The notes below the pieces were generated by a model. That model was not told the origin of the DNA. It made no database searches and was given only the letters and a program-made list of their open reading frames with translations. Below, in pieces: positions 24,504 to 38,370 of a DNA stretch of 64,000 nt (positions are counted from its first letter, which is position 1; each line of letters starts with the position of its first letter). Where the stretch lies: the sequence record ON529858.1. One strand, 5' to 3'. The position numbers and the translations under genes are program-made.

Positions 24504-24671
24504 GTGATAGGCTCCTGAGATGCGCCGGGTAAGTCCGGACATCCACAACCTAGCGGGCAGGTCCTAACAAAGTCCTAACGTCCGAATCTTTTCTCGACTG
24601 CCGGCCGTTAACGATTCGTTAGGACTTTGGGGCTAGGGTGGCTTCATCGCAAACCACTGATGGAGTCCCCC

Positions 24672-25541
24672 ATGACCGCCCGCAAGCCCGCCGCCGCCCT
24701 CACAAATCCCTCCCATAAGGTCGTCGGGCCGGACGGGACGGAGTTCTTTCTGATCCGCCGCAAGGGCGCCCGCCTGCGCATCAAAATCCTCTTCGCCGCG
24801 AACGGTTTCGCGGCGGGCGAGGTCAGCGAGGGTTGGGGACCGACCGGCGCCGATGACGTCCTGATGGGGCATTGGACCGGCCCGCTGGGCTTCCACTTCG
24901 GTTACAACGTCATCCGCCAACTGCCCCAGGGCACGCATTGCGTCGAGATCGGTCGCGAGACCGGCGAGGCGAGCCTTCATGACTATCAGACCGACATCCT
25001 GTATAACGGCGAGGTCACCAACTTCCCCCTGGTCCGCGCCGGGTTCAACGTCGGGCGTTTCGGGCGCAAGGGCCTGCCGGTCACCCGGCCCCAGATCGCC
25101 GAGGCCCGCGCCGTCACCCTCGCCCATAAGGCCGCCCTGATCGACGGGACCTATCGCCGCGACGACGGCCCGATGATCAAGAACACGGCGCCGGACGACG
25201 GCGGCTATCGCCCGACCTATGTCCGCGCCGAGGGCTCGCCCGTCCCCGCCGACCTGCTGGCGGAGTTTGTCGCCGACTGTGACCGCCTGCTGGCCTATCT
25301 GGACTTTCTGGAGACCCTGCCGCCCCTGCCCGAGCGTCCCCGGACCTCCCCGGCGCCGGAAACTCAACTGTCCTGGCTGCGCACCCACGCCCGCTATGAG
25401 CGCGGCGAGAACCTGCGCGCCTATCTGCTGGGCGTGCTGGAGTCCGGGATGAATGACCCGGCCGCCTATGAGGCGGCCCGCGCCGCTGACACCCAGGCGC
25501 ACAACGCCCGCGTCGCCCAGGCGAGAAAATCGGCGGCGTAA
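24672..25541 (+). CDS. early hypothetical protein (cassette)
   Basis: GGAG RBS, ATG 24672; TAA stop lies inside the next junction element. Confidence 0.7.
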   Translation: MTARKPAAALTNPSHKVVGPDGTEFFLIRRKGARLRIKILFAANGFAAGEVSEGWGPTGADDVLMGHWTGPLGFHFGYNVIRQLPQGTHCVEIGRETGEASLHDYQTDILYNGEVTNFPLVRAGFNVGRFGRKGLPVTRPQIAEARAVTLAHKAALIDGTYRRDDGPMIKNTAPDDGGYRPTYVRAEGSPVPADLLAEFVADCDRLLAYLDFLETLPPLPERPRTSPAPETQLSWLRTHARYERGENLRAYLLGVLESGMNDPAAYEAARAADTQAHNARVAQARKSAA

Positions 25542-25602
25542 ACCTCTCGTTAAGACCTCCCCCGTATAAGGGGGAGGTCACCACTGAGAAGGAGTTCTCG
25601 CC

Positions 25603-25986
25603 ATGCCTCTCCCCGCCCACCTCTTCGCCTCCGATGACGGCGGCCTGTATGACACCCGCTCGCCGGACTGGTCTAAGGGCAAGCCCCTGCGCACCGGCTA
25701 CCAGGGCGCCGCCGCCCAGATCGAAACCCTCGCCCAGGTCAAGGCCGCGCTGCGCGCCGGGGGCTTCACCTTCCCCGGCGCCTACCCCCTGTATTTCGTC
25801 ACCCGCGACGGCTGCGCCCTCTCGTTTGACGCGGTCCGCGCCGAGTTCGCCGAGGTCTGCGAGGATTTCCTGGCGGACGTTTCCACCGGCTGGCGGATCA
25901 CCGGTTGCACCGTCAACTATGAGGACTCGGACCTGACGTGTGAACACACGGGCGAGAAGATTCCGGCCGCATACAGCGACGAGTAA
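25603..25986 (+). CDS. early hypothetical protein (cassette)
   Basis: AAGGAG RBS; FPGAYPLYFVTRDG...VNYED motif typical of phage hypotheticals. Confidence 0.75.
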   Translation: MPLPAHLFASDDGGLYDTRSPDWSKGKPLRTGYQGAAAQIETLAQVKAALRAGGFTFPGAYPLYFVTRDGCALSFDAVRAEFAEVCEDFLADVSTGWRITGCTVNYEDSDLTCEHTGEKIPAAYSDE

Positions 25987-26049
25987 CGATCCGTTAAGAC
26001 CTCCCCCGTATAAGGGGGAGGTCACCACCGGCAAGAGAAGGAACCCCGA

Positions 26050-26610
26050 ATGCCCGAGACCGTCACCCAGGCCGAGGCCGCCACCGTTCCCGAATACGCG
26101 GAACACGCTGAGCCGCCCGCCTACGCCGTCGCCGTCTGGACTGATGACGTGATCACCAATCACGGCGGCGACCTGCCCCTGTGGGGCCTGGACGTGCCCG
26201 TGCCCGCCATCGGCGCCGACATCGTCGTGACGATCAACCGTTGCGGCCTCGCCTACGTCACCGGCTATTTCGTGCAAGATGGCTGGCTGGGCGTGCTCTG
26301 CACCCTGCGCAACCCGCCGGAATGGCATGTGAAGCAGAACAAGGGTGATCCCAAGGGCCACGCCTTCGCCCCTGAGTTCCGCCCGGCCGTAGCCGCCGAC
26401 CTCGCCGACCCGCCGGTCGAGACGGGCGTCGCCCGCGCCGTCCGGCTGGGCTACACGGTCGAGTCGACCACCGATGAGGCGGACGGCGTGCCGATCTTCC
26501 GCTACGTCCGGCCGAACGGCGAGCCCGATTCCGAATGGCTGTCGAGCCTCGCCAAAATCTGGGAAGGCGCCGGGTCGGATTCTTTTCTTTGGGAAATGGA
26601 CCACGGGTAA
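26050..26610 (+). CDS. early hypothetical protein (cassette)
   Basis: AAGGA RBS; stop inside junction. Confidence 0.7.
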   Translation: MPETVTQAEAATVPEYAEHAEPPAYAVAVWTDDVITNHGGDLPLWGLDVPVPAIGADIVVTINRCGLAYVTGYFVQDGWLGVLCTLRNPPEWHVKQNKGDPKGHAFAPEFRPAVAADLADPPVETGVARAVRLGYTVESTTDEADGVPIFRYVRPNGEPDSEWLSSLAKIWEGAGSDSFLWEMDHG

Positions 26611-26671
26611 CCTCTTGTTAAGACCTTGCCGGTAGGTTGGCTTCATCAACCACCGGCAAGGAGCCAACCCC

Positions 26672-27031
26672 ATGCGATCCACCCTTTCCAATCTGGTCAT
26701 CGCCCTCAAGACCGCGATCGCCGACAACCGCCGCCTGCCCCGCCCGGCCGATCCGGTCGAGGCCGCTGTCATCGACGGCGTCGGCGCGCTTCAGGCCGAG
26801 GCCCTGGAGAAGGCCGAGGGCCTGCTGGCGGGCCTCGCCTATGAGATCGAGATCGCCCAGGCGGGCGCCCTCATCGGCCTGCTCCGCCTCGACACCCCCT
26901 GCCCGATCAAGGCGGACGCCCAGGCCAAAGCCATCCGCGCCGCCCTCCTGCCCGACGGGATCGAGGCGACCCTCTACGCGGTCGAGATCAACAAAAGCCG
27001 GGTGATCGCTGTCGCTCAATACCCCCGGTAA
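26672..27031 (+). CDS. early hypothetical protein (cassette)
   Basis: AAGGAG RBS; stop inside junction. Confidence 0.7.
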   Translation: MRSTLSNLVIALKTAIADNRRLPRPADPVEAAVIDGVGALQAEALEKAEGLLAGLAYEIEIAQAGALIGLLRLDTPCPIKADAQAKAIRAALLPDGIEATLYAVEINKSRVIAVAQYPR

Positions 27032-27096
27032 CGATCCGTTAAGACCTCCCCCGTATAAGGGGGAGGTCACCACCGTTTGAGAAGGAACCCGCCCAG

Positions 27097-27462
27097 ATGA
27101 GCAAGATCACGATTGAGGAAATCGAAAGCTGGACCGCCGAGGTCGAGCGCCCGCGCCAGACGCTGGAGGTCATTTTCCAAACGCTGGGCTATGACAACGG
27201 GACCAAACGAGTCGACGCCTATGTGATCGTCAAGCGCCCAGGCGGCTACGGTCGCGAGGCGGGCGTCGCCCGTGTCGTCCACGCCAGCGGCTGCTACACC
27301 TACGGGCTGGCCCTGATGTCGCTGGAGCGCCAAATGCGCGCCGCCCGCTTCGCCCCCGCCGCCCAGGCCCTGGTCGAGGGCTTCGCCGCCCAGGCCCGGC
27401 GCCAGGGGATGGACCGAACCGAGTTTCCGAAAAGCGTCACCCTCATTCCGACCGAGCGGTAA
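27097..27462 (+). CDS. early hypothetical protein (cassette)
   Basis: AAGGA RBS; stop inside junction. Confidence 0.7.
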   Translation: MSKITIEEIESWTAEVERPRQTLEVIFQTLGYDNGTKRVDAYVIVKRPGGYGREAGVARVVHASGCYTYGLALMSLERQMRAARFAPAAQALVEGFAAQARRQGMDRTEFPKSVTLIPTER

Positions 27463-27524
27463 CGGTCTGTTAAGATTTGGCCTGTAGGGTCTGATCATCA
27501 ACCCCGGACAAGGAGTCCCCGCCC

Positions 27525-27818
27525 ATGACTAAGCCCGCCAAGCCCCGCAAGCTGACCCGCGCCGAACTGGCCCGCAAGGTGCTCGAACTGGAGGGACAAC
27601 TGGCGTCGTCCTATCACTTCGCCACCCTCGAACTGCACAAGGCGGGCGACAACCTCATGGCGTCCGGCGTGCTCATCTCCCTGACCGCCCTAGGCGGGCG
27701 CGAGATCATCAAGCCCGTGGTGATCCGCGACGGCCTGAGCGCCGCCACCATCGCCGCCCTGCGCGCCGATATGGTGCGCAGCTATGAACTGGCGACCTCT
27801 TTTAAGCCCAAGGCGTAA
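27525..27818 (+). CDS. early hypothetical protein (cassette)
   Basis: AAGGAG RBS; stop inside junction. Confidence 0.7.
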   Translation: MTKPAKPRKLTRAELARKVLELEGQLASSYHFATLELHKAGDNLMASGVLISLTALGGREIIKPVVIRDGLSAATIAALRADMVRSYELATSFKPKA

Positions 27819-27880
27819 CCCTTCGTTAAGACCTCGCCTGTAGGGTGAGGTCATCAACCGCTGGACAAGGAGTCCCCCGA

Positions 27881-28435
27881 ATGCCGACCGCCAAACAAAC
27901 CGCCCAGGCCATCGCCCTGACCCCCTCGACGGGCGAGGCCGTGGCGATGATCCTTCACGCGCTCGACATCGGCCGTCTGTATTTTCAGCGCGAGGTCGAG
28001 GCGACCGACTCGCTGTCGAATAAGGAACTGGCCCAGGTCCGGCTCGACACATTCGAACGCGCCTCGATCATCGCCCGTGAATCCGGCGTGCTCATCACCG
28101 CTGAAGGCGAGAGCGTCGCGGCCATTCTCGACGATCTTTTCAACGCCATGCCTACCCCCGGAACCGACAAGCTGTCAAAGCCGTGGAACCGCGCGCTGAA
28201 GCAAGCCCGCCGCCCGCGCTACCGCTTCAAAGCCGGGACCGGGAGCGCCACCGTGACCGATACGCTTAAGGGCGTCTCCGCCACCACCCGCCACCCCGGA
28301 CCGGTCGCGGCGGCGCGCGAGGCCTTCGCCAATACCGACTCGGGCGCCCACGTCACCCCGGCCGGGGTCGGGGTCTGCGGACTGGATGAGGACAAGGCCC
28401 GCTCATTCCTCGCCACCGCTGAGCGCGGCCGGTGA
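27881..28435 (+). CDS. early hypothetical protein
   Basis: AAGGAG RBS, ATG 27881. Confidence 0.7.
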   Translation: MPTAKQTAQAIALTPSTGEAVAMILHALDIGRLYFQREVEATDSLSNKELAQVRLDTFERASIIARESGVLITAEGESVAAILDDLFNAMPTPGTDKLSKPWNRALKQARRPRYRFKAGTGSATVTDTLKGVSATTRHPGPVAAAREAFANTDSGAHVTPAGVGVCGLDEDKARSFLATAERGR

Positions 28436-28728
28436 GGGCCGGTCAAGTCAAGGTCGCGGTCCCCCTCTCGTTTGGGGCCTGCGGCTATGTCTGGCGCCCG
28501 AACAAAACCGCCGCCGGGATGACGAAAACCGACGCCCGGCGCGGTCAACGGCGCGGCCCAGGCGAGGGCGTCGGGCTCAAGCTGGCGGTGCGCGGGACCA
28601 CCGACGCCCTGGATATGGCCCTGGTTTTCTGCATCACCCGCCGAAACCCGGACTATCTGTGTCTGAACAAATCCGGCAAGGCCCGGCTGGCGCGCCTGAG
28701 AAAACGCCGCGCCGTAACCCTTCGTTAA
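28432..28728 (+). CDS. early hypothetical basic protein
   Basis: GTGA overlap; stop is the second half-site of the junction. Confidence 0.55.
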   Translation: MRAGQVKVAVPLSFGACGYVWRPNKTAAGMTKTDARRGQRRGPGEGVGLKLAVRGTTDALDMALVFCITRRNPDYLCLNKSGKARLARLRKRRAVTLR

Positions 28729-28778
28729 GACCTTGCCGGTAGGTTGGGCTCATCAACCACCGGCAAGGAGCCGCGCCG

Positions 28779-28895
28779 ATGAAACCGACCCGCAACCCCG
28801 CCGCGAAGGCCCTGGCCTCCGCCGCCTACCGTCAACAGGTCGTCAAGCCCCGCAAGGGTCGCGGCGCCTACTCTCGAAAGGGAAACCGCCCATGA
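28779..28895 (+). CDS. ArfA-like 38-aa peptide (not in ORF track)
   Basis: MKPTRNPAAKALASAAYRQQVVKPRKGRGAYSRKGNRP; own promoter, AAGGAG RBS, ATGA overlap with next gene. Confidence 0.75.
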   Translation: MKPTRNPAAKALASAAYRQQVVKPRKGRGAYSRKGNRP

Positions 28896-29374
28896 CCGCC
28901 CTCGACACTGTCAACACCTCGTTTTTCTTCGTCGTCCTGCGCGACGCCCAGGGCGTCCACCTCGCCACCGAAACCGTCTGGTGCCCGCCCGGCTCGAAAC
29001 CCGCCGACATCATCGGCGACGCCTGCTCTTTCTTCCAAGTGGACGAAAACGGCGCCTATGACGACGACGTGATCGCCGCCGGTGTCATCGACCTGTTCGG
29101 CCCCTTCGATCAAGGTTCGGCCCTGACCGTCAAGGTCGCCCGCCCGGACGGCGACGACTTCGCCGACTTCCAGATCGTCCCCGAGACCACCGCCGAACCT
29201 TTCGACTATATGGGCCAGATCATGGCCTATGAGGCGGGCGAACTGGACGACGACGACGTCGACACCCTGTTCCAATATCTGGTCGACACCGGCCTCGCCT
29301 GGAGCCTGCAAGGCGCCTATGGGCGCACCGCCCAGGCCCTGGCCGCCGCCGGTCGAATCACCCTCCCCGAGTAA
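28892..29374 (+). CDS. early hypothetical protein (two-domain)
   Basis: ATG 28892; C-terminal IMAYEAGEL...FQYLVDTGLAWSLQGAYGR domain common in phages. Confidence 0.7.
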   Translation: MTALDTVNTSFFFVVLRDAQGVHLATETVWCPPGSKPADIIGDACSFFQVDENGAYDDDVIAAGVIDLFGPFDQGSALTVKVARPDGDDFADFQIVPETTAEPFDYMGQIMAYEAGELDDDDVDTLFQYLVDTGLAWSLQGAYGRTAQALAAAGRITLPE

Positions 29375-29435
29375 CGAACCGTTAAGACCTCCCCCGTATA
29401 AGGGGGAGGTCACCCACCGAGAAGGAACCCAGATC

Positions 29436-30152
29436 ATGGCCGCTGGAGCCACAAAAGAACAGATTGCCCGCGCCACCCGCACGGCGCTGCAAAAGATCGC
29501 CAAGGCGTCCGGCGGGACCTATACCGCCGCGACCACAAAGACCCGCGCTTTCGCCAGCGGGACCACGAACGACGGCCTGCGCTGGATCGCCAACGTCGGG
29601 AGCGGCAACGCCTCGAACGGTCAAACCTTCCTGAGCCTGAACATTTCCGTCAACGGATCGTTTGGCGAAGCCATCACCCGCACCGGCTATTTTGAAGGCG
29701 ACGTGACCGTCGCGGGCGTCTGCCTGTTGTTCCGCCTGATCAACGGCTATCCCCTCGAACTGGACGGCTCGCCCGGCGACTTCCGCCTGCTGCTGGCGGC
29801 GCCCGGCGTCTCGAACTGGTTCGCCGACCGCTACGCCCTGACCTTCCGGGGCGACGGTTTCGACGTGCTGGACAAGGCCCGCAAAATGGTTCGGACCTTC
29901 ACCGCCGCCGAGGCCGATCAAGAGGCCCGCCGCCTCGCCCTGGCCTTCCGTTCGGACCTGCGCGCCGAGACGATGCCGACCCACTATGACGCGGAAACCT
30001 ACGCCCGCGTCCGGGCTTCTGAGGCCGCCTTGTCGCAACGTCGCGGCGCCGGGCTGGACGCATGGGGCGACGACCGCCTCGCCGTCTATCCCGACGGCTG
30101 GACCGGCGCCCTGACCGACTGGAGGCTGGCCCATGGCCCCCGTGAGAACTGA
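29436..30152 (+). CDS. early hypothetical protein
   Basis: AAGGA RBS, ATG 29436. Confidence 0.7.
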   Translation: MAAGATKEQIARATRTALQKIAKASGGTYTAATTKTRAFASGTTNDGLRWIANVGSGNASNGQTFLSLNISVNGSFGEAITRTGYFEGDVTVAGVCLLFRLINGYPLELDGSPGDFRLLLAAPGVSNWFADRYALTFRGDGFDVLDKARKMVRTFTAAEADQEARRLALAFRSDLRAETMPTHYDAETYARVRASEAALSQRRGAGLDAWGDDRLAVYPDGWTGALTDWRLAHGPREN

Positions 30153-30309
30153 CGGCCTCGTGCCGCTGGAGGTCTGCGCCTCCGCCCTCGAACTCGCCAA
30201 GCGCGATGTCGAGGCGCGGCTGGCGCGTGACCCGAACGCCCACGACGCCGACGTCCTGCGCAGCCAGCGCGACACCTACGCCCGCGCCCTGAGCGTGGCC
30301 TATTCCTGA
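30133..30309 (+). CDS. early hypothetical protein, 58 aa (not in ORF track)
   Basis: GGAGG RBS; MAPVRTDGLVPLEVC... Confidence 0.5.
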   Translation: MAPVRTDGLVPLEVCASALELAKRDVEARLARDPNAHDADVLRSQRDTYARALSVAYS

Positions 30310-30398
30310 AAAAATCTCGACTGCCGGCGCTGCGGTAACTTCTCGTTAAGACCTCTCCCGTATGGTCTCAATATCAACCCCGCCAAGGAGACCACCGA

Positions 30399-30839: not shown

Positions 30840-31051
30840 GCCGGGTCCTGGTCGGGACCGTCCGCGTCCTGGACGGTCAAACCGTCTGCGTCCGCCCTGA
30901 CGGCCGCGTGCATGAAGTCGGCGGCAAGGTCTCGACCTTCCCCGTTTTCGGCGGCCTGCGCCCCTATGATGAGGGCAAGCAGATTTGGCGCGTGGCGGGC
31001 GTGACCCAGATGGAAAACGACTCGCAGCGCGACCGCCGCCTGGGCCGCTAA
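30836..31051 (+). CDS. early hypothetical protein
   Basis: GTGA overlap; TAA stop inside junction. Confidence 0.6.
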   Translation: MSRVLVGTVRVLDGQTVCVRPDGRVHEVGGKVSTFPVFGGLRPYDEGKQIWRVAGVTQMENDSQRDRRLGR

Positions 31052-31113
31052 CCCTTCGTTAAGACCTCGCCTGTAGGGTGAGGTCATCAACCACCGGACA
31101 AGGAGTCCACGCC

Positions 31114-32308: not shown

Positions 32309-32516
32309 GCCCCGCCGCTCCCCCAAGCGCCGCCTCGCCACCTACACGGCGAGGAACGCCCCGCCGCGAGGCAACGCCCGGTCCTATCTTCTGGACTGCC
32401 TGCGCCTCGCCGCTGACTACCGCCGCCGAGGCGTTCCGGCCGTCGCCCGCCTTGTCCTGGCGAATGTCCGCGCCGACCGCCTCGCCCAGCCCGGCCGTCT
32501 CTCGCTCCCCGGCTAA
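32301..32516 (+). CDS. early hypothetical Arg-rich protein
   Basis: ATG 32301 overlapping previous stop. Confidence 0.5.
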   Translation: MTKPRRSPKRRLATYTARNAPPRGNARSYLLDCLRLAADYRRRGVPAVARLVLANVRADRLAQPGRLSLPG

Positions 32517-32712
32517 GTCACGATTCCACCCACCTATGACATCTAGCCTTGTATTCCCCGGAACAAACAAGCATAGATGTCATTATTCCCCGGCGAGATG
32601 ACTCGTCTCATGACACAGGAGGCCTAGCACATTCATTTAGTTGAGGGTTTTATCAAGGGTTCCGCCCTGATCGCTGCACTCGTTTTTCTCATGCTTTTCT
32701 TCTAGCGCGAGA

Positions 32713-32834
32713 GGGACCCACGAAAATCTAGGCAAGGGACCCGTCGGATTCGTCCGGCGGGTCCCTTCGCATTTCAGGGCAGGGACCCGCGAGATTTAAG
32801 GGCAGGGACCCGCGCGTTTTCATGGCCGGGACCC
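32713..32834. repeat. second array of six GGGWCCC boxes at exact 23-bp period
   Basis: Boxes at 32713, 32736, 32759 (GGGTCCC), 32782, 32805, 32828. Confidence 0.92.
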
Positions 32835-33013
32835 TAGGGAATCCTCCCCAGGATTGGAGGCCGTTTTCCGGCCCGCTGAGCGCCTTGCCGCACCTTCCGG
32901 ACCCAGGGCCTGGACCGACCCAGGCCCAGGCCCTGGCGGGCCTCCCAGGCGTTTACGATTTGGTAAGACCTGCCCGCTAGGATCACGTCATCAACCGCAC
33001 AAGGAATCCCCCC

Positions 33014-33631
33014 ATGACCTTCCCCGTCTACACCGCGACCGCCGCCTCTGTCGGCGCCGCCCATATCCTGCGCGACGGTCAAGCCGTGCTCTACGTCAAG
33101 ACGATGCGCGACCCGTCCGACTCGACCCGGCCCCTGCTGTCGGATGACGCCCTAGGCGACTTGGTCGAGGCGACGGCCGAGCGCCTGACCGGCGCCACCC
33201 TGGACCGCGCCGACGCCGTCCTGCTGGCGCGCGTGCTCGACCCGGCATTCGCCACCACCGACGCCGACCTCGCCCAGGTCCGGGCCGCGCTGAACTTCGC
33301 CCTGCAAGACGCCCCAGGCGAGAAGCAGGCCGCCCGGCGGCGGCTGGCCGAGATCACCCCCGAGCAGCGCGCCCGGATCGACCGGGACGTCGCCCAGGCC
33401 CAGGGCGTCGCCACCTATCAGGGCTACGCCTGCCTCGCCTATGTGGACCGGATCGGCGGCGTGGTCATCAAGGACTCGACCGACGGGCGCGACGCCTACG
33501 TCCAACCCGGCGACGACGCCGCCGCCCTGCGGGCTGAACTGGAGGCGGCCGAGGGCGTGCCCGAGCCGACCACCTCCGCCGCCCTAGGCCCGCACGACCT
33601 GATCGAGAACATCCTGCGAGAATACTTCTAG
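33014..33631 (+). CDS. early hypothetical protein
   Basis: AAGGA RBS, junction promoter at 32952. Confidence 0.7.
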   Translation: MTFPVYTATAASVGAAHILRDGQAVLYVKTMRDPSDSTRPLLSDDALGDLVEATAERLTGATLDRADAVLLARVLDPAFATTDADLAQVRAALNFALQDAPGEKQAARRRLAEITPEQRARIDRDVAQAQGVATYQGYACLAYVDRIGGVVIKDSTDGRDAYVQPGDDAAALRAELEAAEGVPEPTTSAALGPHDLIENILREYF

Positions 33632-33688
33632 GCCGTTCACACTTCGTTAGCACCTCCCGGCTATGGTCGGGAGGTCGAACGGAAAAGC

Positions 33689-33830
33689 GCTTTGATCGCC
33701 CAGGGATTTGATCGCCGAGCGATTTGATCGCCCAGGGATTTGATCGCCGAGCGATTTAACCAGCGGGCGATTTAACCAGGGAGCGATTCAACAACCGCCC
33801 GTTTCATTTTGACCGGGAGCCGATTTGATC
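33689..33830. repeat. second 16-bp-period array
   Basis: Cores at 33691, 33707, 33723, 33739, 33755, 33771, 33787, 33808, 33824. Confidence 0.85.
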
Positions 33831-33835
33831 CTGGT

Positions 33836-33970
33836 TAGTTAACGGCGTGTTAACGAACATGAACGCGATATAGTTAACGAACATTAACCATGATGTGGTT
33901 AACGCAGCATTAACCTTCACGCCGTTAAGGTTAACGGCGCGTTAATGATGAACGAATATGGTTAACGCGA
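33836..33970. repeat. second dense TTAAC cluster
   Basis: Shares TTAACCTTCACGCYGTTAAGGTTAA with 23963 (copy at 33910). Confidence 0.75.
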
Positions 33971-34143
33971 TAGCCGTCCCCCGCCGTTGTGCCCCTTAAG
34001 TTCGAAGAGCCCGGCCTAGTCTCAAGAGTAGCACGCCGAATCCTAACAAGTCACTAACAAAATCAAGAAAAGTTCTTTTCGGGCGTTAATCTCTTCTTAA
34101 GGACTCGGGCCTAGATTGGCCTAGTCAACAACGGAGCAACCCA

Positions 34144-34467
34144 ATGACAACCCGCACCGCCGCCCAGACCGCCGCCCTCGCCGACATGGTCGCGAAGTTC
34201 GAAGGCATCGCCCAGACGCTGGAGTCCGCCGCCCTGACCGCTACCGGTTACATTCTGGCTTGGCCGACCGGCCTAGGCATCCGCTGGGTCGATGGCTCGC
34301 CCGTCGTCTGCGGAGTGCTACACGCCGACCCGATCACCGACTCGGCCCAGACGTTCACGATCCAGAACGGCGCCGGTGAAGTCGCCCGGCTCTTCACCCG
34401 CAAGGAAGCGCTAGAGGGCGCCGCCGCCTCCGCCCGCGAGTCGCTCGCATTCATGAAGGCCGCCTAG
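34144..34467 (+). CDS. early hypothetical protein
   Basis: GGAG RBS; perfect TTAA-N7-TTAA at 34086. Confidence 0.7.
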   Translation: MTTRTAAQTAALADMVAKFEGIAQTLESAALTATGYILAWPTGLGIRWVDGSPVVCGVLHADPITDSAQTFTIQNGAGEVARLFTRKEALEGAAASARESLAFMKAA

Positions 34468-34535
34468 CAGGATCGGCGCCCGGCTCAGGCCGGGCGCCAG
34501 ACCCTGGCCCCATAGTTAACGAAATCGGCTTTTCT

Positions 34536-34642
34536 GTTAACCATGTTTGGTCACCATGAAGAAACATGGTTAACCGCGTTAACCATGTTTGGTCACTATG
34601 AACAAACATGGTTAACGCGATAGTCGATCCCTCCCTAAGACT
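34536..34642 (-). ncRNA. candidate small hairpin RNA (two tandem 39-bp palindromic units)
   Basis: Units 34536-34574 and 34578-34616 downstream of minus-strand promoter box 34660; no ORF. Confidence 0.4.
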
Positions 34643-34706
34643 ACTCTAATCTCAAAAAGTTAACAGGAGGTTAACGCCGGGAGAAAAATCTCCCGGCGCC
34701 GACCTG

Positions 34707-35015
34707 CTAGAGGCGGAGGCCGACCTTGGCGCCGGGCTTGCCTTGCGGCCGTTCGGCCTCCGCCGGTTCGATCCAGTGCGCGAGGCCGAACGCTTGCACG
34801 CTGAAAGGCTCGCGCTTGACGGACTCGGCGGAGGCGGCGCAAGTCGCGTCATCCAGAAGCGAATCGGCGTTCGCGTCGTCGTCCGGATAGAGGTCATTCC
34901 GCGTGGCGACCAAATCGGCGCAAAGGGTAAAAAACGCATCTTCAAAGGATGCGCAAACGACGGGCTCCGAGTCCGGGAGATAGCCGGGAGCGTTGAAGCC
35001 GACAAGGTAAGCCAT
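34707..35015 (-). CDS. early hypothetical protein
   Basis: MAYLVGFNAPGYLPDSEP; promoter box at 35084. Confidence 0.7.
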   Translation of the reverse strand: MAYLVGFNAPGYLPDSEPVVCASFEDAFFTLCADLVATRNDLYPDDDANADSLLDDATCAASAESVKREPFSVQAFGLAHWIEPAEAERPQGKPGAKVGLRL

Positions 35016-35094
35016 GGGGGCTGATCCTCAAGAGCGGGGCGCCGCCAATCGGCGCCCCTTGTGACCTGTATAGGGGCGAAGTCTTAACGAACCG

Positions 35095-35250
35095 TTAAAC
35101 CGGCTCGACCCGGATAATCAGGGCGCGATTGCCGAACGCGAGGCGCGCGGCCTCTTCGCCGCCTTCGCCGCGCCAGATGCAGGCATGGGGCGCGCCCTCT
35201 TCGCCCTGAACCCAAACGCGGAAGGCGGAAGCGGCGGAGGCGGTTTTCAT
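35095..35250 (-). CDS. early hypothetical protein, 51 aa
   Basis: ATG 35250; TAA stop forms the half-site of the minus-strand junction. Confidence 0.55.
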   Translation of the reverse strand: MKTASAASAFRVWVQGEEGAPHACIWRGEGGEEAARLAFGNRALIIRVEPV

Positions 35251-35409
35251 GGCGGTATTCCCTAGGCGGGAGAAGCCCCGCCCCCTGTATCTAGGCCTCC
35301 GCATTTTTCTTGTCAACACTTGCAAGCCAGTAACCTTTTGTTAAGACTTTGGCCCTAGGTTGAGATTGTTCAGACGGATTGGCCGCCGGGACAGTGAAGG
35401 AAAAACACC

Positions 35410-35838
35410 ATGCGCAACGCTTCGATCATTCTCCCCGCTCGCGACAATGACGGCGCCGACCTCTCGCCCTTGCACGCCATTCTGGCGGCTGAACTGTGCA
35501 ACACGTTCGGCGGCTTCACTGCCTCCGCCGTGACTGGCGCATGGCGCGACGACACGGACGGCCGCATCTATCAGGATGAGTCGACGGAATACCGCATCGC
35601 CGCCGACTGGAATCCCGCACAACGCGAGGCGCTGGAGTCCATCGCCGCTCGCTACTGTGCGGAGGCCCGTCAGGTGGTCATCTATGTTCAGCACGCGAAC
35701 GGCGCCGTTTCCTTTGTCCCGCCGGTGGAATACGCGGAAGCCGTCGAGACGGCGCCCCGCACGGGCGAGCCGGACCACAAGGGCGCCCGACGCAAACAGG
35801 CGGAGGCGTTCGGCGAACTCTTCGCCCGCGTCGCCTAG
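35410..35838 (+). CDS. early hypothetical protein
   Basis: AAGGA RBS; FGGFT....GAW motif. Confidence 0.7.
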   Translation: MRNASIILPARDNDGADLSPLHAILAAELCNTFGGFTASAVTGAWRDDTDGRIYQDESTEYRIAADWNPAQREALESIAARYCAEARQVVIYVQHANGAVSFVPPVEYAEAVETAPRTGEPDHKGARRKQAEAFGELFARVA

Positions 35839-35967
35839 GCCAAGCGAGAGAGGCGCCGCCCTAGGGCGGCGCCGATTCTTTTCTGGCCGTTAAGGGTTTG
35901 GTAACACCCTGGCCCTAAACAGGAAGGGCGGAGGCGATTGGCGCCCCGCCCTTTAGGACCTGAACCG

Positions 35968-36180
35968 ATGCAAGATCACTACGCAATCAACGTCGCAAAA
36001 GACAACGGCCGCAAGGCCTATGGCGGAGGCCGTAGCTACTCCCATTTTTTCCGGGCGGAGGTCCGCGACACTGTCCCGGCGAAGGAAGCCGCCGCTGCTA
36101 TCCGGGCGGCTTTCCCGGAACCGGAATACAAGGTTGACGTGACCTTGTGGCAAGGTCGCGGTTACTCTCAGGACTTCTAA
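35968..36180 (+). CDS. early hypothetical protein
   Basis: AGGA RBS, ATG 35968. Confidence 0.65.
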   Translation: MQDHYAINVAKDNGRKAYGGGRSYSHFFRAEVRDTVPAKEAAAAIRAAFPEPEYKVDVTLWQGRGYSQDF

Positions 36181-36257
36181 GGCGAAGGGCGCCCGGCAGA
36201 GCCGGGCGCCCACTGCCGGCCGTTAACGGTTTGTTAAGACTTTCCGGCTATCCTGAC

Positions 36258-36345
36258 AGTAGGGAGGGATCGACTACCGCGTTAACCATGTTTGTTCATG
36301 GTGACCAAACATGGTTAACAGCCTAGCCGATCCCTCCCTAAGACT
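36258..36345. ncRNA. candidate small hairpin RNA flanked by opposed promoters
   Basis: Outer stem AGGGAGGGATCG/CGATCCCTCCCT enclosing a 39-bp unit (36281-36319); promoter boxes at 36223 (+) and 36364 (-). Confidence 0.4.
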
Positions 36346-36473
36346 GACTATACCGGCAAGAGGTTAACAAAAGGTAAACGCAGAAAAGAAAGTCCGTTTA
36401 CCTTTTGTTAAGACTTCGCCCCTAGTGTGAGTTTGTCGAGGCAATCCCGCCTCCCCTGCTTAAGGCCTCTCAG

Positions 36474-36746
36474 ATGTCCCTCGCCGAATATATCGCCCGC
36501 GCAAACGCCGCCCTTATCAAGCGCCACGGAATCTGCTTCATCACGGACGAAAACACGTCTTGGCTTGGCGACTCGGGCGCCGACGAATCGGACCTCGCCC
36601 GCTATCAGGCGGACGGCGACACGCCGGAGCAAATCGCCGCGTTTTGGGGTGACAAATACGGACTCGACTCCGTGTTCGGCGACTTCGACTCCATGGCGTC
36701 GGACTATCTGGCGAAAGCCCTTTCCGCTCTTGAGGTGGCGGCATGA
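36474..36746 (+). CDS. early hypothetical acidic protein
   Basis: Junction promoter at 36397. Confidence 0.65.
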   Translation: MSLAEYIARANAALIKRHGICFITDENTSWLGDSGADESDLARYQADGDTPEQIAAFWGDKYGLDSVFGDFDSMASDYLAKALSALEVAA

Positions 36747-36952
36747 GGGCCGTTCTCGCCGCCCTAGGCGCGGCGCTGGCGTTGGGGGCTTGCGCCCCCT
36801 CCGCCGGGCCTTCCTATACCCTGCTAGGCGTTGACGCGGCGGGCGAAGGCTACGCGCTCGACACGCGCCAGACGCTGGCGGACTGCCAGCGCCAGACGTT
36901 CGATTATGACCTAAGATTCGTCGAAAAACTTTGCGTGGCGGAGGCGTCTTAA
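36743..36952 (+). CDS. small lipoprotein
   Basis: MRAVLAALGAALALGA-C lipobox; stop inside junction. Confidence 0.7.
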   Translation: MRAVLAALGAALALGACAPSAGPSYTLLGVDAAGEGYALDTRQTLADCQRQTFDYDLRFVEKLCVAEAS

Positions 36953-36979
36953 CCTCTTGTTAAGACTTTCCCCGTAAAC

Positions 36980-37012
36980 AGGTCAGGTCAGGGGCGCTTC
37001 TGCCCCTGACCT
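36980..37012 (+). repeat. 33-bp hairpin leader repeated at 38320-38352
   Basis: AGGTCAGGTCAGGGGCGCTTCTGCCCCTGACCT identical in both copies. Confidence 0.85.
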
Positions 37013-37028
37013 AGCAAGGATCGCCCCC

Positions 37029-37415
37029 ATGGCCCGCCCCTCCGATCGCAACGCCCTTCTGACCCACGAAACCGTCAAGGCCTTTGCGCCGATCGCGTCC
37101 GCCGCCGTCGCCTCGCGCGACGCCGCTGCTATCGAGTCCGCCTCGCATATCTCCGCCGCTCTTGAGGCCTTGGCGCAATGGCGCCGGGATACGACGGAAA
37201 CGAGCCGCCGCCATGCGTTCGGCGCCGCCTCCGCCGCCTATGCCGTCGCATCCAGCCGCGCCACGGGTCACGGCGCCGTCGCGACCCGCCGCGCCCTGAC
37301 CGCCTATGCCGCCGGGCTCTTGCTCGCCACGGGCGCCCAAAACGACGCGCAAGCGGCCTTGCACGCTTGCACCGGCGCCGCTCGAATGTTGCTGGCCCTC
37401 GCCCGCGCGGCGTAA
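37029..37415 (+). CDS. early hypothetical Ala-rich protein
   Basis: AAGGA RBS; stop inside junction. Confidence 0.65.
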   Translation: MARPSDRNALLTHETVKAFAPIASAAVASRDAAAIESASHISAALEALAQWRRDTTETSRRHAFGAASAAYAVASSRATGHGAVATRRALTAYAAGLLLATGAQNDAQAALHACTGAARMLLALARAA

Positions 37416-37483
37416 CCCTTTCTTAACGCCCTGGCCCTAGAAAGGGTCAGGGCAATAAAGCCCCCTCAGAGAAAGCCGAACCC

Positions 37484-37672
37484 ATGCAAAAGCGCCATTT
37501 TGAAGCCGTCGCCGCCGACATCCGCCGCGCCTATCAGCAAGCCGAATCCGACGGCGAGCGGCGCGGCTGCTATGCCGTCGCGCACAACCTCGCCGAAACC
37601 TTCGCCGCTGCTAACCCCCTGTTTGACCGTCAACGCTTCCTTGTGGCGTGTGGCGTTGTGGCGGGGGGCTAG
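37484..37672 (+). CDS. early hypothetical protein
   Basis: MQKRHFEAVA...A..FAAANPLFDRQRFL.AC pattern common in phage early genes. Confidence 0.7.
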   Translation: MQKRHFEAVAADIRRAYQQAESDGERRGCYAVAHNLAETFAAANPLFDRQRFLVACGVVAGG

Positions 37673-37676
37673 GGCC

Positions 37677-37955
37677 ATGATCGCCACGCCTGCCCGCCTC
37701 AGAGAGGCTAGACGCCAAGCCCGCTCAGATGCGCGCCAAGGCCGGGCCTGTGACCCTTGCGGGTTCACGGGCCTAGCAGCGGAGGCCTATCGCAAGGCCT
37801 TTCGTGGGTTCTTTAGCGTGACCTATAGAGGGGTCAATCTGGAGCGCAACACAACGCGCCCCCATGCCTTGCGCTGGAGCGCGCTAGGCTATGGCGCGGC
37901 CGATACCCTAGACGGACTCAAGCGCCTTGTGCGCGACACTCAAGCGGAGGCTTAG
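37677..37955 (+). CDS. early hypothetical protein
   Basis: ATG 37677 (MIATPARL). Confidence 0.55.
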   Translation: MIATPARLREARRQARSDARQGRACDPCGFTGLAAEAYRKAFRGFFSVTYRGVNLERNTTRPHALRWSALGYGAADTLDGLKRLVRDTQAEA

Positions 37956-37959
37956 CCCC

Positions 37960-38289
37960 ATGCCCCATATCATCCTAGAACGCCACGCCTACGCCCCTGA
38001 ACTGAACCGCGCGCATATCCTCCGCAAGGGGCGAGTCGTGGCTCAGAGGCCTTGCCCCGGCGCCCTCTCGATCAAAGAGGCGCGCGCCATGCTATGGCCT
38101 CGCCTGACGCAAGGCCCTGCCCGCGTCGCCTTCTATGCCTCGCACTATGAGGGCGCCCGCAAGTGGCTTGAGAGGGCCTATCACGGCCGCGTCTCCAGCT
38201 ACGCCGCCGCGCTCGCCTTCTGGCGTCAAGAGGCCGCCAAACTGGCGCCCGGCGGAACCGCTACGATTCGCACAAGGCTTGTCGGCTAG
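37960..38289 (+). CDS. early hypothetical protein
   Basis: GGAGG RBS, ATG 37960. Confidence 0.6.
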   Translation: MPHIILERHAYAPELNRAHILRKGRVVAQRPCPGALSIKEARAMLWPRLTQGPARVAFYASHYEGARKWLERAYHGRVSSYAAALAFWRQEAAKLAPGGTATIRTRLVG

Positions 38290-38370
38290 TAACCTTTTGT
38301 TAAGACTTGCCCCGTATAAAGGTCAGGTCAGGGGCGCTTCTGCCCCTGACCTGAACCGGAGTTTCCCGCT

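Follow-up and report, generated by a model that had tools for sequence, protein, structure and literature searches.

What joins the small genes of this locus, and does the joint serve to move genes or to express them? The window analysed in this study is a 64,000-nucleotide stretch (record ON529858.1) of the 207-kb genome of Brevundimonas phage vB_BgoS-Bajun, a phiCbK-like phage. A preliminary description of this DNA had proposed an integron-like gene-shuffling system in which each junction supplies a CtrA box, a hairpin, an RBS and the stop codon of the preceding gene. Sequence comparisons lead us to a different weighting of these parts. We consider it probable that the array lies in the terminal repeat of the phage and that its junctions are composites of a terminator-like hairpin and a CtrA promoter, with recombination as a by-product.

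The junction array and its location

The GenBank record of Bajun is circular, with the terminal repeat collapsed, and the genome termini of phiCbK have been mapped (Gill 2012). Window 21945-22324 aligns with phiCbK 6-385, which is the left physical end, inside terL. Window 38637-38684 aligns with phiCbK 10240-10287 (82% over 49 bp, E = 5e-6), a segment that stops exactly at the mapped right boundary of the direct terminal repeat (DTR) of phiCbK. From this homology, a Bajun DTR of ~16.7 kb holding the junction array is predicted. The features are as follows.

21940..38684, + strand: predicted DTR of Bajun, ~16.7 kb, by homology to the mapped phiCbK termini; encloses the entire array
24608..24671, +: junction 1; box TTAACGATTCGTTAG; -10 TAGGGT 24634-24639; RBS; ATG 24672; no strong hairpin (z -1.2); no co-directional upstream gene
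25539..25602, +: junction 2, type A; stop TAA 25539-25541 overlaps the left half-site, 1 nt out of register; hairpin GACCTCCCCC/GGGGGAGGTC surrounds -10 TATAAG; z -4.25
25983..26049, +: junction 3, type A; left half-site is stop 25984-25986; 48 bp identical to junction 5; z -3.4
26607..26671, +: junction 4, type C; left half-site is stop 26608-26610; long hairpin CCTTGCCGGT...ACCGGCAAGG spanning spacer to RBS; z -4.7
27028..27096, +: junction 5, type A; left half-site is stop 27029-27031; 48 bp common to junction 3
27459..27524, +: junction 6; left half-site is stop 27460-27462; -10 TAGGGT; no significant hairpin (z +0.7)
27815..27880, +: junction 7, type B; left half-site is stop 27816-27818; 44 bp identical to junction 11; hairpin GACCTCGCCT/GGGTGAGGTC with 2 G·U pairs; z -2.5
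28714..28778, +: junction 8, type C; right half-site is the upstream stop 28726-28728; z -3.0
29371..29435, +: junction 9, type A; left half-site is stop 29372-29374; z -4.1
30335..30398, +: junction 10; upstream TGA ends at 30309, 26 nt before the box; no hairpin (z -0.7)
31048..31113, +: junction 11, type B; left half-site (CTAA) is stop 31049-31051; 44 bp common to junction 7
31578..31642, +: junction 12, type B; left half-site is stop 31579-31581; z -3.1
32952..33013, +: junction 13; degenerate box TTTACGATTTGGTAA; -10 TAGGAT; conserved CATCAACC; no hairpin (z +0.9), no abutting upstream gene
33636..33680, +: junction 14, decayed; box TTCA..TTAG; hairpin CCTCCCGG/CGGGAGG around TATGGT; no downstream ORF; z -3.2; sequence counterpart of the phiCbK/Magneto gp020 promoter
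34086..34143, +: junction 15; box TTAATCTCTTCTTAA; -10 TAGATT; moderate hairpin (z -2.3)
34643..34674, -: junction 24; points into the double palindrome 34505-34640; no ORF
35016..35098, -: junction 16; left half-site is the stop of minus-strand gene 35250..35095; hairpin downstream, in the 5′UTR; z -2.0
35330..35409, +: junction 17; box GTAACCTTTTGTTAA, identical to phiCbK boxes; -10 TAGGTT; no hairpin; downstream gene is a homolog of phiCbK gp018
35852..35873, +: separate canonical intrinsic terminator, 9-bp GC stem and T-run, after gene 35410-35838 and upstream of junction 18
35890..35967, +: junction 18; box TTAAGGGTTTGGTAA; -10 TAAACA; 5′UTR hairpin; z -3.5
36223..36257, +: junction 19; box TTAACGGTTTGTTAA, identical to the phiCbK gp005/gp018 boxes; -10 TATCCT; no ORF; points into a palindrome
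36347..36378, -: junction 25; convergent with junction 19 on one palindrome; no ORF
36397..36473, +: junction 20; box TTTACCTTTTGTTAA; -10 TAGTGT; 5′UTR stem-loop with conserved loop GCAATCCCGC
36949..37028, +: junction 21; left half-site is stop 36950-36952; 33 bp identical to junction 23; hairpin begins approximately at the predicted start site; z -3.4
37412..37483, +: junction 22; left half-site is stop 37413-37415; hairpin GCCCTGGCCCT/AGGGTCAGGGC surrounds -10 TAGAAA; z -3.25
38289..38370, +: junction 23; upstream TAG 38287-38289 abuts the TAA of the box; 5′UTR hairpin (z -4.0); last before the predicted DTR end

The junctions share the form [T/G]TAAC-N6-TTAAGAC followed by TAnnn[T/A], and 25 oriented copies were counted in the window, in agreement with the claim of about 25. 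Such a number greatly exceeds chance: the window has 17 occurrences of TAA-N7-TTAAGA versus 0.02 expected. When one mismatch is allowed, the composite NTAA-N7-TTAA-N11-TAnnn[T/A] has 28 matches on the two strands of the genome, and all 28 fall within window 24024-38289, a 14-kb segment inside the predicted DTR. An RBS and a start codon follow 58-83 nt after the box start in 21 of the 25 junctions, and the other four (33636, 36223, 34674 and 36378, the last two on the minus strand) have no downstream ORF. Information content is highest at offsets 1-3, 11-14 and 26-27. The last pair is the TA of a -10-like TAnnnT located exactly 11 nt past the right half-site, and this TA is found at the same offsets in 25/25 junctions. 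The preliminary description was right about the box and the RBS-ATG end, but it missed this truly invariant third element, and the GAC that it treated as a fixed part is not invariant.

The stop positions that had been listed all match GenBank CDS ends, including the right half-site at 28728. Twelve stops had been equated with the left half-site. Eleven of these are exact (25986, 26610, 27031, 27462, 27818, 29374, 31051, 31581, 36952, 37415 and, on the minus strand, 35095), but the stop at 25541 only overlaps it, in TAAA-N7-TTAA. The left half-site is used by 11 of the 13 stops inside junctions (binomial p = 2e-4 versus equal frames). The array genes end on TAA in 16-17 cases, TGA in 6 and TAG in 7, versus TGA 144, TAA 49 and TAG 38 elsewhere in the genome according to heuristic gene calls (Fisher p = 3e-4); TGA does prevail outside the array, as had been stated. 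The proposal that junctions supply stops also holds, with all three reading frames closed in 15 of 21 cases. No Pfam family was assigned to 17 of the 20 cassette proteins, no paralogues occur among the cassette proteins of Bajun, and gene order is not the same in Bajun, Domovoi and phiCbK. The array appears to consist of tiny orphan genes separated by ~65-base elements, each combining the upstream stop, its putative RNA hairpin and a predicted CtrA-dependent promoter.

Hairpins and the upstream gene

A hairpin had been attributed to every junction. Values of z <= -2 were obtained for 14 of the 20 folded junctions, but hairpins are not universal, and they occupy three positions rather than one. 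When all junctions of 11 phages are averaged, their core shows hardly more structure than random 36-mers of the same GC-rich regions (mean -10.5 versus -8.9 kcal/mol), and the signal comes from a subclass. Strong hairpins, defined by dG <= -15, are present in 8 of the 11 Bajun junctions whose left half-site is the stop versus 1 of the 10 others (hypergeometric one-sided p = 0.006); in that single case, the stop sits in the right half. Junction 6 (27459) is an exception to this rule. Across the 11 phages, the corresponding counts are 24/38 versus 3/36 (Fisher p = 7e-7), with orthologues that are not independent. Junctions with upstream room have separate terminators or hairpins instead.

The hairpins cover offsets 15 to 37/40 and end at the predicted start site; therefore, they could exist only in RNA arriving from upstream. 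Of 22 distinct hairpins, 21 fold more stably as sense than as antisense RNA (Wilcoxon p = 2e-5), and the set contains 29 G·U pairs on the sense strand versus 3 on the antisense strand. Compensatory changes were observed in three sets of orthologous promoters: CCCCCCGG/CGGGGGG versus CCTCCCGG/CGGGAGG versus CCCCTGG/CAGGGGG; CTCGCCGCC/GGCGGGG versus CCGGCCGC/GGCCGGG; and CCTGACC/GGTCAGG versus CTTGACC/GGTCAAG. We read the hairpins as probable 3′ RNA elements of the upstream gene that lie inside the promoter which follows. The T-run of intrinsic terminators is absent from the junction hairpins, and termination as such is therefore doubtful.

The predicted CtrA promoter

According to Mascolo (2022), equivalent phiCbK promoters are bound by CtrA and depend on it for activation, and CtrA sites are clustered. 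The gp005 and gp018 promoters are bound by CtrA~P in EMSA, and their activity falls 29-fold and 5-fold, respectively, in a ctrA-ts strain (Mascolo 2022). These two promoters (boxes at 2594 and 8835) have the same architecture as the Bajun junctions, and the Bajun box at 36223 matches theirs exactly. In activated host promoters, the full CtrA motifs are located at the -35 region, and the 5′ nucleotide of the box of host ctrA P2 is at -39. The Bajun geometry fits these host promoters as well as those of phiCbK gp005 and gp018, in line with the earlier view of the boxes as CtrA-type sites. The -10 TAGGGT is also paired with a canonical TTGACA-N17 at window 52303-52331. The junction element is predicted to be a compact CtrA-activated promoter with the CtrA box in place of the -35. 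Because SciP represses full-motif CtrA promoters of the host in swarmer cells, the timing of the phage promoters is uncertain. The CtrA-promoter part is known already through the equivalent phiCbK promoters; the association of hairpin with stop, the end of the hairpin before the predicted start, the sense-only G·U pairs and the compensatory changes are absent from Mascolo (2022).

Recombination and competing readings

Identical stretches of exactly 48, 44 and 33 bp, as claimed, are shared between junctions despite unrelated flanking genes, and box spacer, hairpin type and leader type are combined mosaically among the Bajun junctions. The collections searched contained no close Bajun relative. 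In phiCbK relatives, two cassettes (Ccr29 gp008 and one in RBC63) are each bracketed by a pair of junction copies, with junction overlaps of 62-75 bp, at sites where relatives have a single junction, and phiCbK differs from Swift by a block replacement whose ends fall at junction offsets +59 and +1. About 4 of the 14 structural events among phiCbK-like DTRs have both ends in junctions versus ~0.1-0.6 expected (binomial p = 0.002 even under an intergenic-only null), but junctions are not involved in ~8 of the 14. The suggested alignment of relatives thus places breakpoints at junctions in only part of the cases. Moreover, some concentration of breakpoints in conserved intergenic elements is to be expected, since recombinants survive only with their genes intact.

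Could the junctions be plain, independently evolving promoters, near-identical through functional constraint only, with no role in recombination and with stop overlap as mere compaction? The box and the -10 are accounted for by what a CtrA promoter requires, GC3-rich codons explain the GTAA left half where it doubles as a stop, and many indels are located elsewhere. However, identity over 48/48 and 44/44 bp covers spacer, stem and leader, which vary freely between subfamilies. Homogenisation is seen among the junction paralogues of phiCbK, which carry CTTCTGGCCTC at 2304, 3980 and 5178 and nearly the same sequence at 6403, and Rogue junctions at corresponding positions differ among themselves. 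The same-offset indels with long junction overlaps are a signature of repeat-mediated recombination, and the excess of events with both ends in junctions also argues against this reading, which we consider unlikely. At the other extreme, a dedicated system for shuffling cassettes, either integron-like or a mobile element, would have the junctions as recombination sites, the capture and movement of ORFs as its main role, and the promoter, RBS and stop as parts of the mobile unit. The junction-flanked cassette indels, the identical copies beside unrelated genes, the closure of three frames, the scarcity of Pfam families and the mini-circles formed by T4 PeSLs are all compatible with such a system. 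Nevertheless, the annotation of the Bajun genome contains no integrase or any other recombinase, and the junctions have no inverted terminal repeats, target-site duplications or attC-like features. They are always found in one orientation directly 5′ of a gene; relatives have most of their indels elsewhere; their strongest sequence constraints are those of the CtrA promoter; and the hairpin follows the upstream stop codon, not the cassette boundaries. We regard a dedicated system as quite unlikely. The integron-like part of the earlier proposal finds no support, and its gene-shuffling part retains the cassette indels of phiCbK relatives but not dedicated mobility. On these data we favour a regulatory element that, by being repeated, secondarily offers homology for recombination.

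Two other readings concern what recognises the element. The hairpins might act as DNA, either as cruciforms with a single-stranded -10 (a promoter pre-melted on entering DNA) or as operators for a dimeric phage repressor that shuts off early genes. Types A and B, the junctions at 33636, 34086 and 37412 and several relatives do have the -10 within the loop or beside it, and an inverted repeat covering a -10 occupies a classic site for an operator. Cruciforms and operators should be strand-symmetric, however, and the G·U counts and stabilities given above are not. Stem sequences and arm spacing vary between subfamilies, so that no single protein could read all of them, and the hairpins are absent from promoters without an abutting upstream gene; we find a role as DNA highly improbable. 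A phage-encoded regulator might instead read the boxes, their likeness to CtrA boxes being mimicry or coincidence. The N7 spacer, C[C/G][T/G]TTTG, is unusually conserved in Bajun and phiCbK-like phages although a plain CtrA site does not require it, and the Bajun annotation includes a histidine kinase, a GcrA homologue and HTH proteins. Yet purified CtrA~P shifts the gp005 and gp018 probes of phiCbK, half-site mutations abolish the shift, and these promoters, whose boxes recur identically in Bajun, work in uninfected Caulobacter cells, and their activity collapses in the ctrA-ts strain, i.e., without any phage protein. We give this reading very little credence.

According to the composite of hairpin and CtrA promoter that we prefer, the array would comprise about 20 back-to-back mono- or bicistronic transcription units for orphan proteins. 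Host CtrA~P on the box ([T/G]TAAC-N6-TTAA, replacing the -35) would recruit RNA polymerase, with a predicted start within the conserved CATCAAC, ~38-39 nt from where the box begins, and a leader of 25-45 nt with an RBS; transcription would presumably be early. Where genes abut, the upstream gene ends on the TAA of the left half-site. In these stop-in-box cases, the GC-rich RNA hairpin of that gene would occupy the stretch around the -10, from the right half-site to the start site, probably as an attenuator, terminator or 3′-end stabiliser, and the 11-nt gap from stop to hairpin may hold the ribosome clear of the stem as it terminates. In anatomy, T4 PeSLs are a fitting comparison: their stem-loops likewise lie between -35 and -10 or over the -10, and they finish with SD and ATG. 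By this analogy, the Bajun junctions may be a convergent look-alike of T4-type promoter/stem-loop cassettes. Because ~20 similar elements of 60-80 bp lie in direct orientation, homologous recombination between them would occasionally delete, duplicate or swap the intervening genes in Bajun itself, probably as a by-product, as in T4 PeSLs, rather than through dedicated mobile machinery.

The junction array and its predicted promoters

The genome of Brevundimonas phage vB_BgoS-Bajun (ON529858.1), a member of the Dolichocephalovirinae or phiCbK-like phages, has 207,261 bp and matches the window at 100% identity; window positions are obtained by subtracting 62,000 from those of the record. On one side of the flagged stretch is the large terminase gene, with its end at window position 22718, and on the other is the portal gene; the approximately 30 genes of the stretch are all annotated as hypothetical. 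According to Gill (2012), the physical genome of phiCbK starts inside terL and begins with a direct terminal repeat (DTR) of 10.3 kb. The left end of phiCbK aligns to window 21945-22324, and the 48 bp that end exactly at its right DTR boundary align to window 38637-38684 (82% identity, E = 5e-6). Because the deposited record is circular and the repeat collapsed, we infer the extent of the Bajun DTR from homology with these termini, which predicts a repeat of 16.7 kb at approximately 21940-38684, and the junction array (24608-38370) fills it. Searches of 50,697 phage records with megablast and blastn returned Bajun itself and scattered single genes, and no close relative appeared there or in the IMG/VR and metagenome collections searched. 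A general junction pattern matched 40 IMG/VR loci once each, which is the chance level, with no array, and a specific 22-base junction pattern had 0 matches in the metagenomes.

A junction is an element of approximately 65 bases between Bajun genes that comprises a CtrA box ([T/G]TAAC-N6-TTAAGAC), 11 nt, the hexamer TAnnn[T/A] and usually an RBS and a start codon; offsets are counted in nt from the start of the box, whose two TTAA-like halves are the left and right half-sites. The preliminary description counted approximately 25 junctions built of a box, a hairpin and an RBS, and they are real and far above chance. The sequence TAA-N7-TTAAGA occurs 17 times in the window, compared with 0.02 expected. 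The composite pattern NTAA-N7-TTAA-N11-TAnnn[T/A], scanned genome-wide on both strands with at most one mismatch, has 28 matches in 207 kb, every one within the 14 kb of window 24024-38289. We counted 25 oriented junctions, all of which contain NTAA-N7-TTAA with at most one or two mismatches (the right half nearly invariant, the left half T/G/C-TAA), and an RBS and start codon follow 58-83 nt after the box start in 21 of them. The box of the preliminary description is confirmed, whereas the third invariant element is a -10-like hexamer and the hairpin occurs in a subclass only. In every junction, TA stands exactly 11 nt past the right half-site (TAGGGT, TAGGTT, TATAAG, TAAACA and others). The information content peaks at offsets 1-3 (TAA), 11-14 (TTAA) and 26-27 (TA), with weaker signals from a T-rich spacer and from CATCAAC near offset 38-44.

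Activated host promoters carry a full CtrA motif at the -35 region, and the ctrA P2 box has its 5′ nucleotide at -39 (Zhou, 2015). With a start approximately 7 nt past the -10 element, the 5′ nucleotide of the Bajun box would fall at -38/-39, and the predicted start at offset 38-39 matches the geometry of ctrA P2. As in the host promoters ctrA P2, fliQ, fliL and pilA site 1, a single full motif would cover the -35 region and begin approximately 39 nt before the start, and the left half-site is degenerate in its first base or bases. The phage versions differ in that they are pressed against or into the preceding coding sequence, stand approximately 20 in tandem and have a conserved T-rich spacer; any SciP/MucR control region of a Bajun junction would fall within the preceding gene. 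The same architecture is found in the DTRs of phiCbK, Magneto, Karma, Ccr2, Ccr29, Swift, Rogue, RBC63 and CcrPW, and also in that of Domovoi, a jumbo Brevundimonas phage. Among the phiCbK promoters that share it are those of gp005 (box at 2594) and gp018 (box at 8835). CtrA~P binds these two promoters, whose activity fell 29-fold and 5-fold, respectively, in a ctrA-ts strain (Mascolo et al., 2022; PMC9437464). The Bajun box at 36223 (TTAACGGTTTGTTAA) is identical to the gp005 and gp018 boxes, and three other phiCbK boxes match those at 35330 and 38289 exactly. Taken together, the host-like geometry and the CtrA binding and dependence known from phiCbK make the CtrA-promoter reading of the Bajun junctions, which the preliminary description had adopted, a well-supported prediction from sequence.

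CtrA promoters of this kind, with CtrA-binding sites clustered in the terminal repeats, have already been published for the subfamily. Bajun belongs to the same subfamily as the phages in the 'lytic deferment' study of Mascolo et al. (2022; PMC9437464), and its region likewise lies downstream of terL in the predicted DTR, with the same TTAA-N7-TTAA sites upstream of genes of unknown function at equally skewed positions, 21 of 25 directly before a start codon. We found no sign of Bajun among the phages analysed in that study, whose text treats binding sites only and mentions no hairpin, stem-loop, terminator, stop codon, recombination or shuffling. Within this text search, it contains nothing on a fixed distance to the -10, on how stop, box and hairpin are coupled, on a sense-strand RNA hairpin with its covariation, or on the three-frame stops, the back-to-back transcription units and the junction-flanked cassette indels.

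A generic sigma70 scan picks up none of the junctions, in which the CtrA box takes the place of the -35 element. A textbook TTGACA-N17-TAGGGT promoter at 52303-52331 (+), outside the DTR and with the same -10 flavour as the junctions, shows at the sequence level that Bajun also has predicted promoters of the ordinary sigma70 type. A lone box-like site, GTAAACTTCTCTTAAGAAGGACATCCCATG, lies outside the DTR at 14507-14536 (+); it has no -10 at the correct spacing, its right half-site runs directly into an RBS, and it is probably a chance occurrence or another kind of site.

The DTR contains further repeated structures. Two convergent junction-type promoters without an ORF, at 36223 (+) and 36378 (-), are aimed into a near-perfect palindrome of approximately 80 nt at 36258-36348 (TAGGGAGGGATCG...GTTAACCATGTTTG..CAAACATGGTTAAC...CGATCCCTCCCTA), which folds as RNA at -51 and -57 kcal/mol on the two strands (z -8.6 and -10.7), has no Rfam match and may be either a DNA site or two sRNAs, sense and antisense. 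This unit recurs at 34505-34645, where the promoter is at 34674 (-); the conserved TAGGGAGGGATCGACTA leader is shared, and the GTTAACCATGTTTG palindrome is present twice in tandem (-57 kcal/mol, z -7.1). The extended motif GTTAACCATGTTTG, which includes a CtrA half-site of the TTAACCAT type, has 10 sites with at most two mismatches in window 22722-38674, compared with 0.07 expected; all are within the predicted DTR, and one copy adjoins each predicted boundary (at 22722 and at 38661). Conserved copies are also present in Rogue, Swift, RBC63 and CcrPW, again within the DTR (compared sequences L047, ~2013/2132; L050, ~2016/2153; L052, ~2010/2165; L055, 166). Dense clusters of TTAAC/GGTTAAC half-sites without a -10, at 23937-24060 and 33839-33960, bracket the main promoter run, and a comparable cluster lies at phiCbK 2007-2060, upstream of the first junction; such a region might titrate CtrA or be origin-like. 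Iteron-like direct repeats, GATTTGATCGCC / CGATTTAACCAG, occur in approximately 8 copies in the gene-free sequence at 33680-33830, past the decayed junction at 33636, and four direct repeats of approximately 14 bp (GGCAGGGACCCGCG-like) occur at 32700-32840, in a mid-array gap of 500 bp that contains no genes.

Stop codons and hairpins within the junctions

The preliminary description placed 12 upstream stop codons in the left half-site. All agree with GenBank CDS ends; eleven are exactly the TAA of the left half-site, whereas the one at 25541 overlaps the half-site 1 nt out of register. The stop at 28728, described as the right half-site, agrees with the GenBank CDS end, and that at 38289 is a TAG abutting the TAA of the box. 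The left half-site is used by 11 of 13 in-junction stops (binomial p = 2e-4). The TAA stop is mostly preceded by G or C, the bases to be expected at the third position of a final codon when the genome is GC-rich. TAA ends 16-17 of the approximately 30 array genes, compared with 49 TAA, 144 TGA and 38 TAG when genes were called heuristically in the remainder of the genome, not only of the window (Fisher p = 3e-4), which bears out the dominance of TGA outside the array that had been described. The TGA-ending array genes are mostly coupled to the next gene by ATGA/GTGA overlaps within one unit.

The three A/T-rich elements of the promoter start at offsets 1, 12 and 26, which are three different reading frames. 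Therefore, most junctions (15/21) close every frame, compared with 15.5% of shuffled sequences, and the earlier statement that any ORF captured between two junctions gains a stop is literally true. This three-frame property is a by-product of the promoter geometry.

Significant structure (z <= -2) was present in 14 of the 20 folded junctions, and the hairpin takes one of three positions:

An arm on each side of the -10: types A and B, plus junctions 33636, 34086 and 37412
From the spacer to the RBS: type C
In the 5′UTR: junctions 35098 (minus strand), 35890, 36949 and 38289

When 79 junction cores from 11 phages were pooled, the fold energy was hardly better than that of random 36-mers; therefore, the hairpin is a subclass feature. 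The signal emerged only when junctions with an upstream stop in the box were separated from the rest. A dG <= -15 kcal/mol is reached in Bajun by 8 of 11 junctions with a left-half stop, compared with 1 of 10 others (hypergeometric one-sided p = 0.006), and in that single exception the stop is the right half-site. In the 11 phages, whose orthologues are not independent, a strong hairpin occurs in 24/38 vs 3/36 (Fisher p = 7e-7). Where there is room upstream of the box, a separate terminator or hairpin precedes it, for example at Bajun 35852-35873 and at phiCbK 5140-5164 and 9386-9413 (annotated).

The hairpins cover offsets 15 to 37-40. Because they end at the predicted transcript start, the RNA would form only in transcripts from the upstream gene. 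Of 22 distinct hairpins, 21 fold more stably as sense than as antisense RNA (Wilcoxon p = 2e-5), with 29 G·U pairs in the sense strand and 3 in the antisense strand, and this asymmetry argues against a DNA cruciform or a protein operator. Compensatory changes maintain the stems. That of the gp020 promoter is CCCCCCGG/CGGGGGG in phiCbK, CCTCCCGG/CGGGAGG in Magneto, Karma and Bajun 33636, and CCCCTGG/CAGGGGG in RBC63; other pairs are CTCGCCGCC/GGCGGGG in Rogue vs CCGGCCGC/GGCCGGG in RBC63, and CCTGACC/GGTCAGG in Swift vs CTTGACC/GGTCAAG in RBC63. We conclude from these patterns that the hairpin is probably a 3′ RNA element of the upstream gene, built into the next promoter where the genes abut. 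Judging from the size of a ribosome footprint, we infer that the left half, 11 nt before the stem, is the nearest stop position that would spare the hairpin from the terminating ribosome.

The junction hairpins are followed by ACCACC, ATCAACC or GCAAGG rather than by a U-tract, so they do not have the form of intrinsic terminators, and a terminator scan of the plus strand reported the separate terminator at 35852-35873 and no junction hairpin. The hairpin may be an attenuator, a pause site, a processing site or a 3′ stabiliser. An Rfam search returned no credible family.

A different stem-loop is conserved in the 5′UTR, with the loop GCAATCCCGC (variant GCATCCCGC) on differing complementary stems (GAGGC/GCCTC in Bajun, CCGGGC/GCCCGG in phiCbK-like phages). 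It occurs at window 36437-36452, at approximately 4020, 5220, 6445 and 8880 of compared sequence L046, in relatives, and in many junction leaders subfamily-wide, and it may be a 5′ stabiliser or a protein-binding site.

Cassette genes and their possible exchange

No Pfam family is matched by 17 of 20 cassette proteins, and the remaining three match only domains of unknown function (DUF7417, DUF7447 and DUF3574). The PHROG matches are to families of unknown function, save a dubious 'DNA ligase' label on a 127-aa protein, and PADLOC gave 0 matches for 10 cassette proteins. Because the genes are located in the DTR, they are presumably expressed early. Only 3-5 of the approximately 30 array genes are shared with phiCbK or Domovoi, in altered order.

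The 127-aa protein (window 25603-25986) is the most widely conserved in the array, with 62-64% identity in Domovoi and CcrPW; the 'DNA ligase' label, from one PHROG and RefSeq, is doubtful because of the size of the protein. A search with it found 53-58% identity in four contigs of 47-48% GC (two marine TARA scaffolds, one IMG/VR contig and the metagenome contig VAPL010361003.1), which we rejected as Bajun relatives, since none has a junction and the contexts are unrelated. At 32301-32516 (+) there is an unannotated arginine-rich ORF of 71 codons with a TAA stop, probably an overlooked gene; its ATG and the last bases of gene 31643-32308 overlap (ATGACTAA).

The near-identical junction stretches in the preliminary description measure exactly 48, 44 and 33 bp. 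Perfectly identical copies stand beside genes that are unrelated, and no two of the cassette proteins are paralogous. Box spacers, hairpin types and leader types are combined as mosaics across the Bajun junctions; hairpin types B and C, for instance, are both found with the spacer CCCTTCG, and types B and D share one leader. Junction copies are homogenised within phiCbK, and at the corresponding positions of Rogue the junctions differ among themselves. The gp008 cassette of Ccr29 (approximately 595 bp) lies between two junctions where phiCbK and Ccr2 have a single one, with an overlap of 62-63 bp, and it is also present in Rogue beside a different downstream gene. Similarly, a junction stands on each side of RBC63 gene 2637-3023, in the place of a single Swift junction (75-bp overlap), and both a two-gene insertion in RBC63 and the block swap of phiCbK gp008-gp011 for Swift gp008-gp010 end inside junctions. 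Gene order 1, 2, 3, 15, 16 in Bajun is 2, 3, 15, 1, 16 in Domovoi; relative to phiCbK, the gp010-like and gp011-like genes are inverted.

An alignment across relatives had been proposed as a check of whether breakpoints map to junctions, and among phiCbK-like phages the answer is divided. Among 14 structural events in eight phiCbK-like DTRs, approximately 4 have both ends in junctions, which exceeds an intergenic-only null (p = 0.002), and 2 have one end there, whereas 8 are unrelated to junctions; the events other than those 4 are deletions between paralogues, intragenic replacements and insertions at gene boundaries within operons. The 2.6-kb tandem duplication in Ccr29 was rejected as a junction-to-junction event, since one breakpoint is in a junction (offset +35) and the other at a start codon. 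Its joint (L048, the Ccr29 sequence, 9788-9830) fuses a CtrA promoter, just past the -10, to the start of the duplicated gene, which is TTG with no leader or RBS remaining, and the transcript is putatively leaderless.

According to Arbiol (2010; PMC2839356) and Comeau (2014; PMC4122927), the PeSLs of T4-type phages are composite terminator/promoter motifs, in which the stem-loop lies mostly between the -35 and -10 or over the -10, an SD and ATG stand at the 3′ end, and ORFans are flanked; terminator activity and mini-circles have been demonstrated. The Bajun junctions have the same anatomy, with a stem-loop in or over the promoter (z <= -2 in 14/20) followed by an SD and ATG (21/25). They likewise border small ORFans in a hyperplastic, presumably early region, and, as with PeSLs, some indels and replacements between relatives, here phiCbK-like phages, end in the repeated copies. 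However, there is no sequence homology, and Bajun is a siphovirus of Caulobacterales, an unrelated lineage with an unrelated host. Moreover, the strong sigma70-consensus promoter of PeSLs, with its consensus -35 and AT-rich upstream (UP) element, is replaced by a predicted activator-dependent promoter; because a CtrA box serves as the -35, junction expression would be tied to a host cell-cycle regulator. In the junctions, the stop codon also belongs to the activator site.

The preliminary description went further and proposed a PeSL/integron-like shuffling system. The PeSL analogy holds in anatomy and partly in dynamics, whereas a dedicated mobile system is unsupported. An integron (attC x attI, IntI) is likewise an array of promoter-dependent small ORFs parted by structured repeats, but it has a single Pc, whereas each junction cassette has its own promoter. 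No integrase or recombinase occurs among the annotated features examined, those outside window 41353-63900, and the hairpins are simple perfect stems that are not attC-like; any recombination signature at the junctions is homologous rather than site-specific. A REP/MITE reading also fails, since the junctions have a fixed orientation 5′ of genes and no terminal repeats, target duplications or recombinase. The integron-like, mobile reading is not supported, and the junctions are best seen as regulatory elements that repetition has made recombination hotspots.

Implications for the Dolichocephalovirinae

A further-reaching reading is tentative and, taken as a whole, rather unlikely: the Dolichocephalovirinae would have independently evolved a PeSL-like cassette architecture together with an overlapped unit of approximately 40 bp that supplies portable homology for gene exchange. 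This unit would overlap a host activator site, the stop codon of the prior gene, the 3′ RNA hairpin of that gene and the start site of the next, so that transcription units would abut without gaps, with the stop-to-hairpin distance tuned to ribosome clearance. As portable homology, the units would allow early orphan genes to be exchanged among Caulobacter and Brevundimonas phages, and any newly gained gene would thereby fall automatically under CtrA control.

The reading of the junctions as CtrA promoters with built-in hairpins joins two known ideas, the host-CtrA control of phiCbK-type early genes and the promoter/stem-loop cassette that drives gene turnover. If this model holds, it would explain how approximately 20 independently regulated orphan genes are packed into the first-entering DNA, and it would provide a subfamily-wide rule (TAA, 11 nt, hairpin, +1) for annotating promoters, starts and 3′ ends. 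The junction could also serve as a compact, activator-dependent promoter/insulator part for Caulobacter genetics. The PeSL-like architecture would then be a convergent solution and not a peculiarity of T4.
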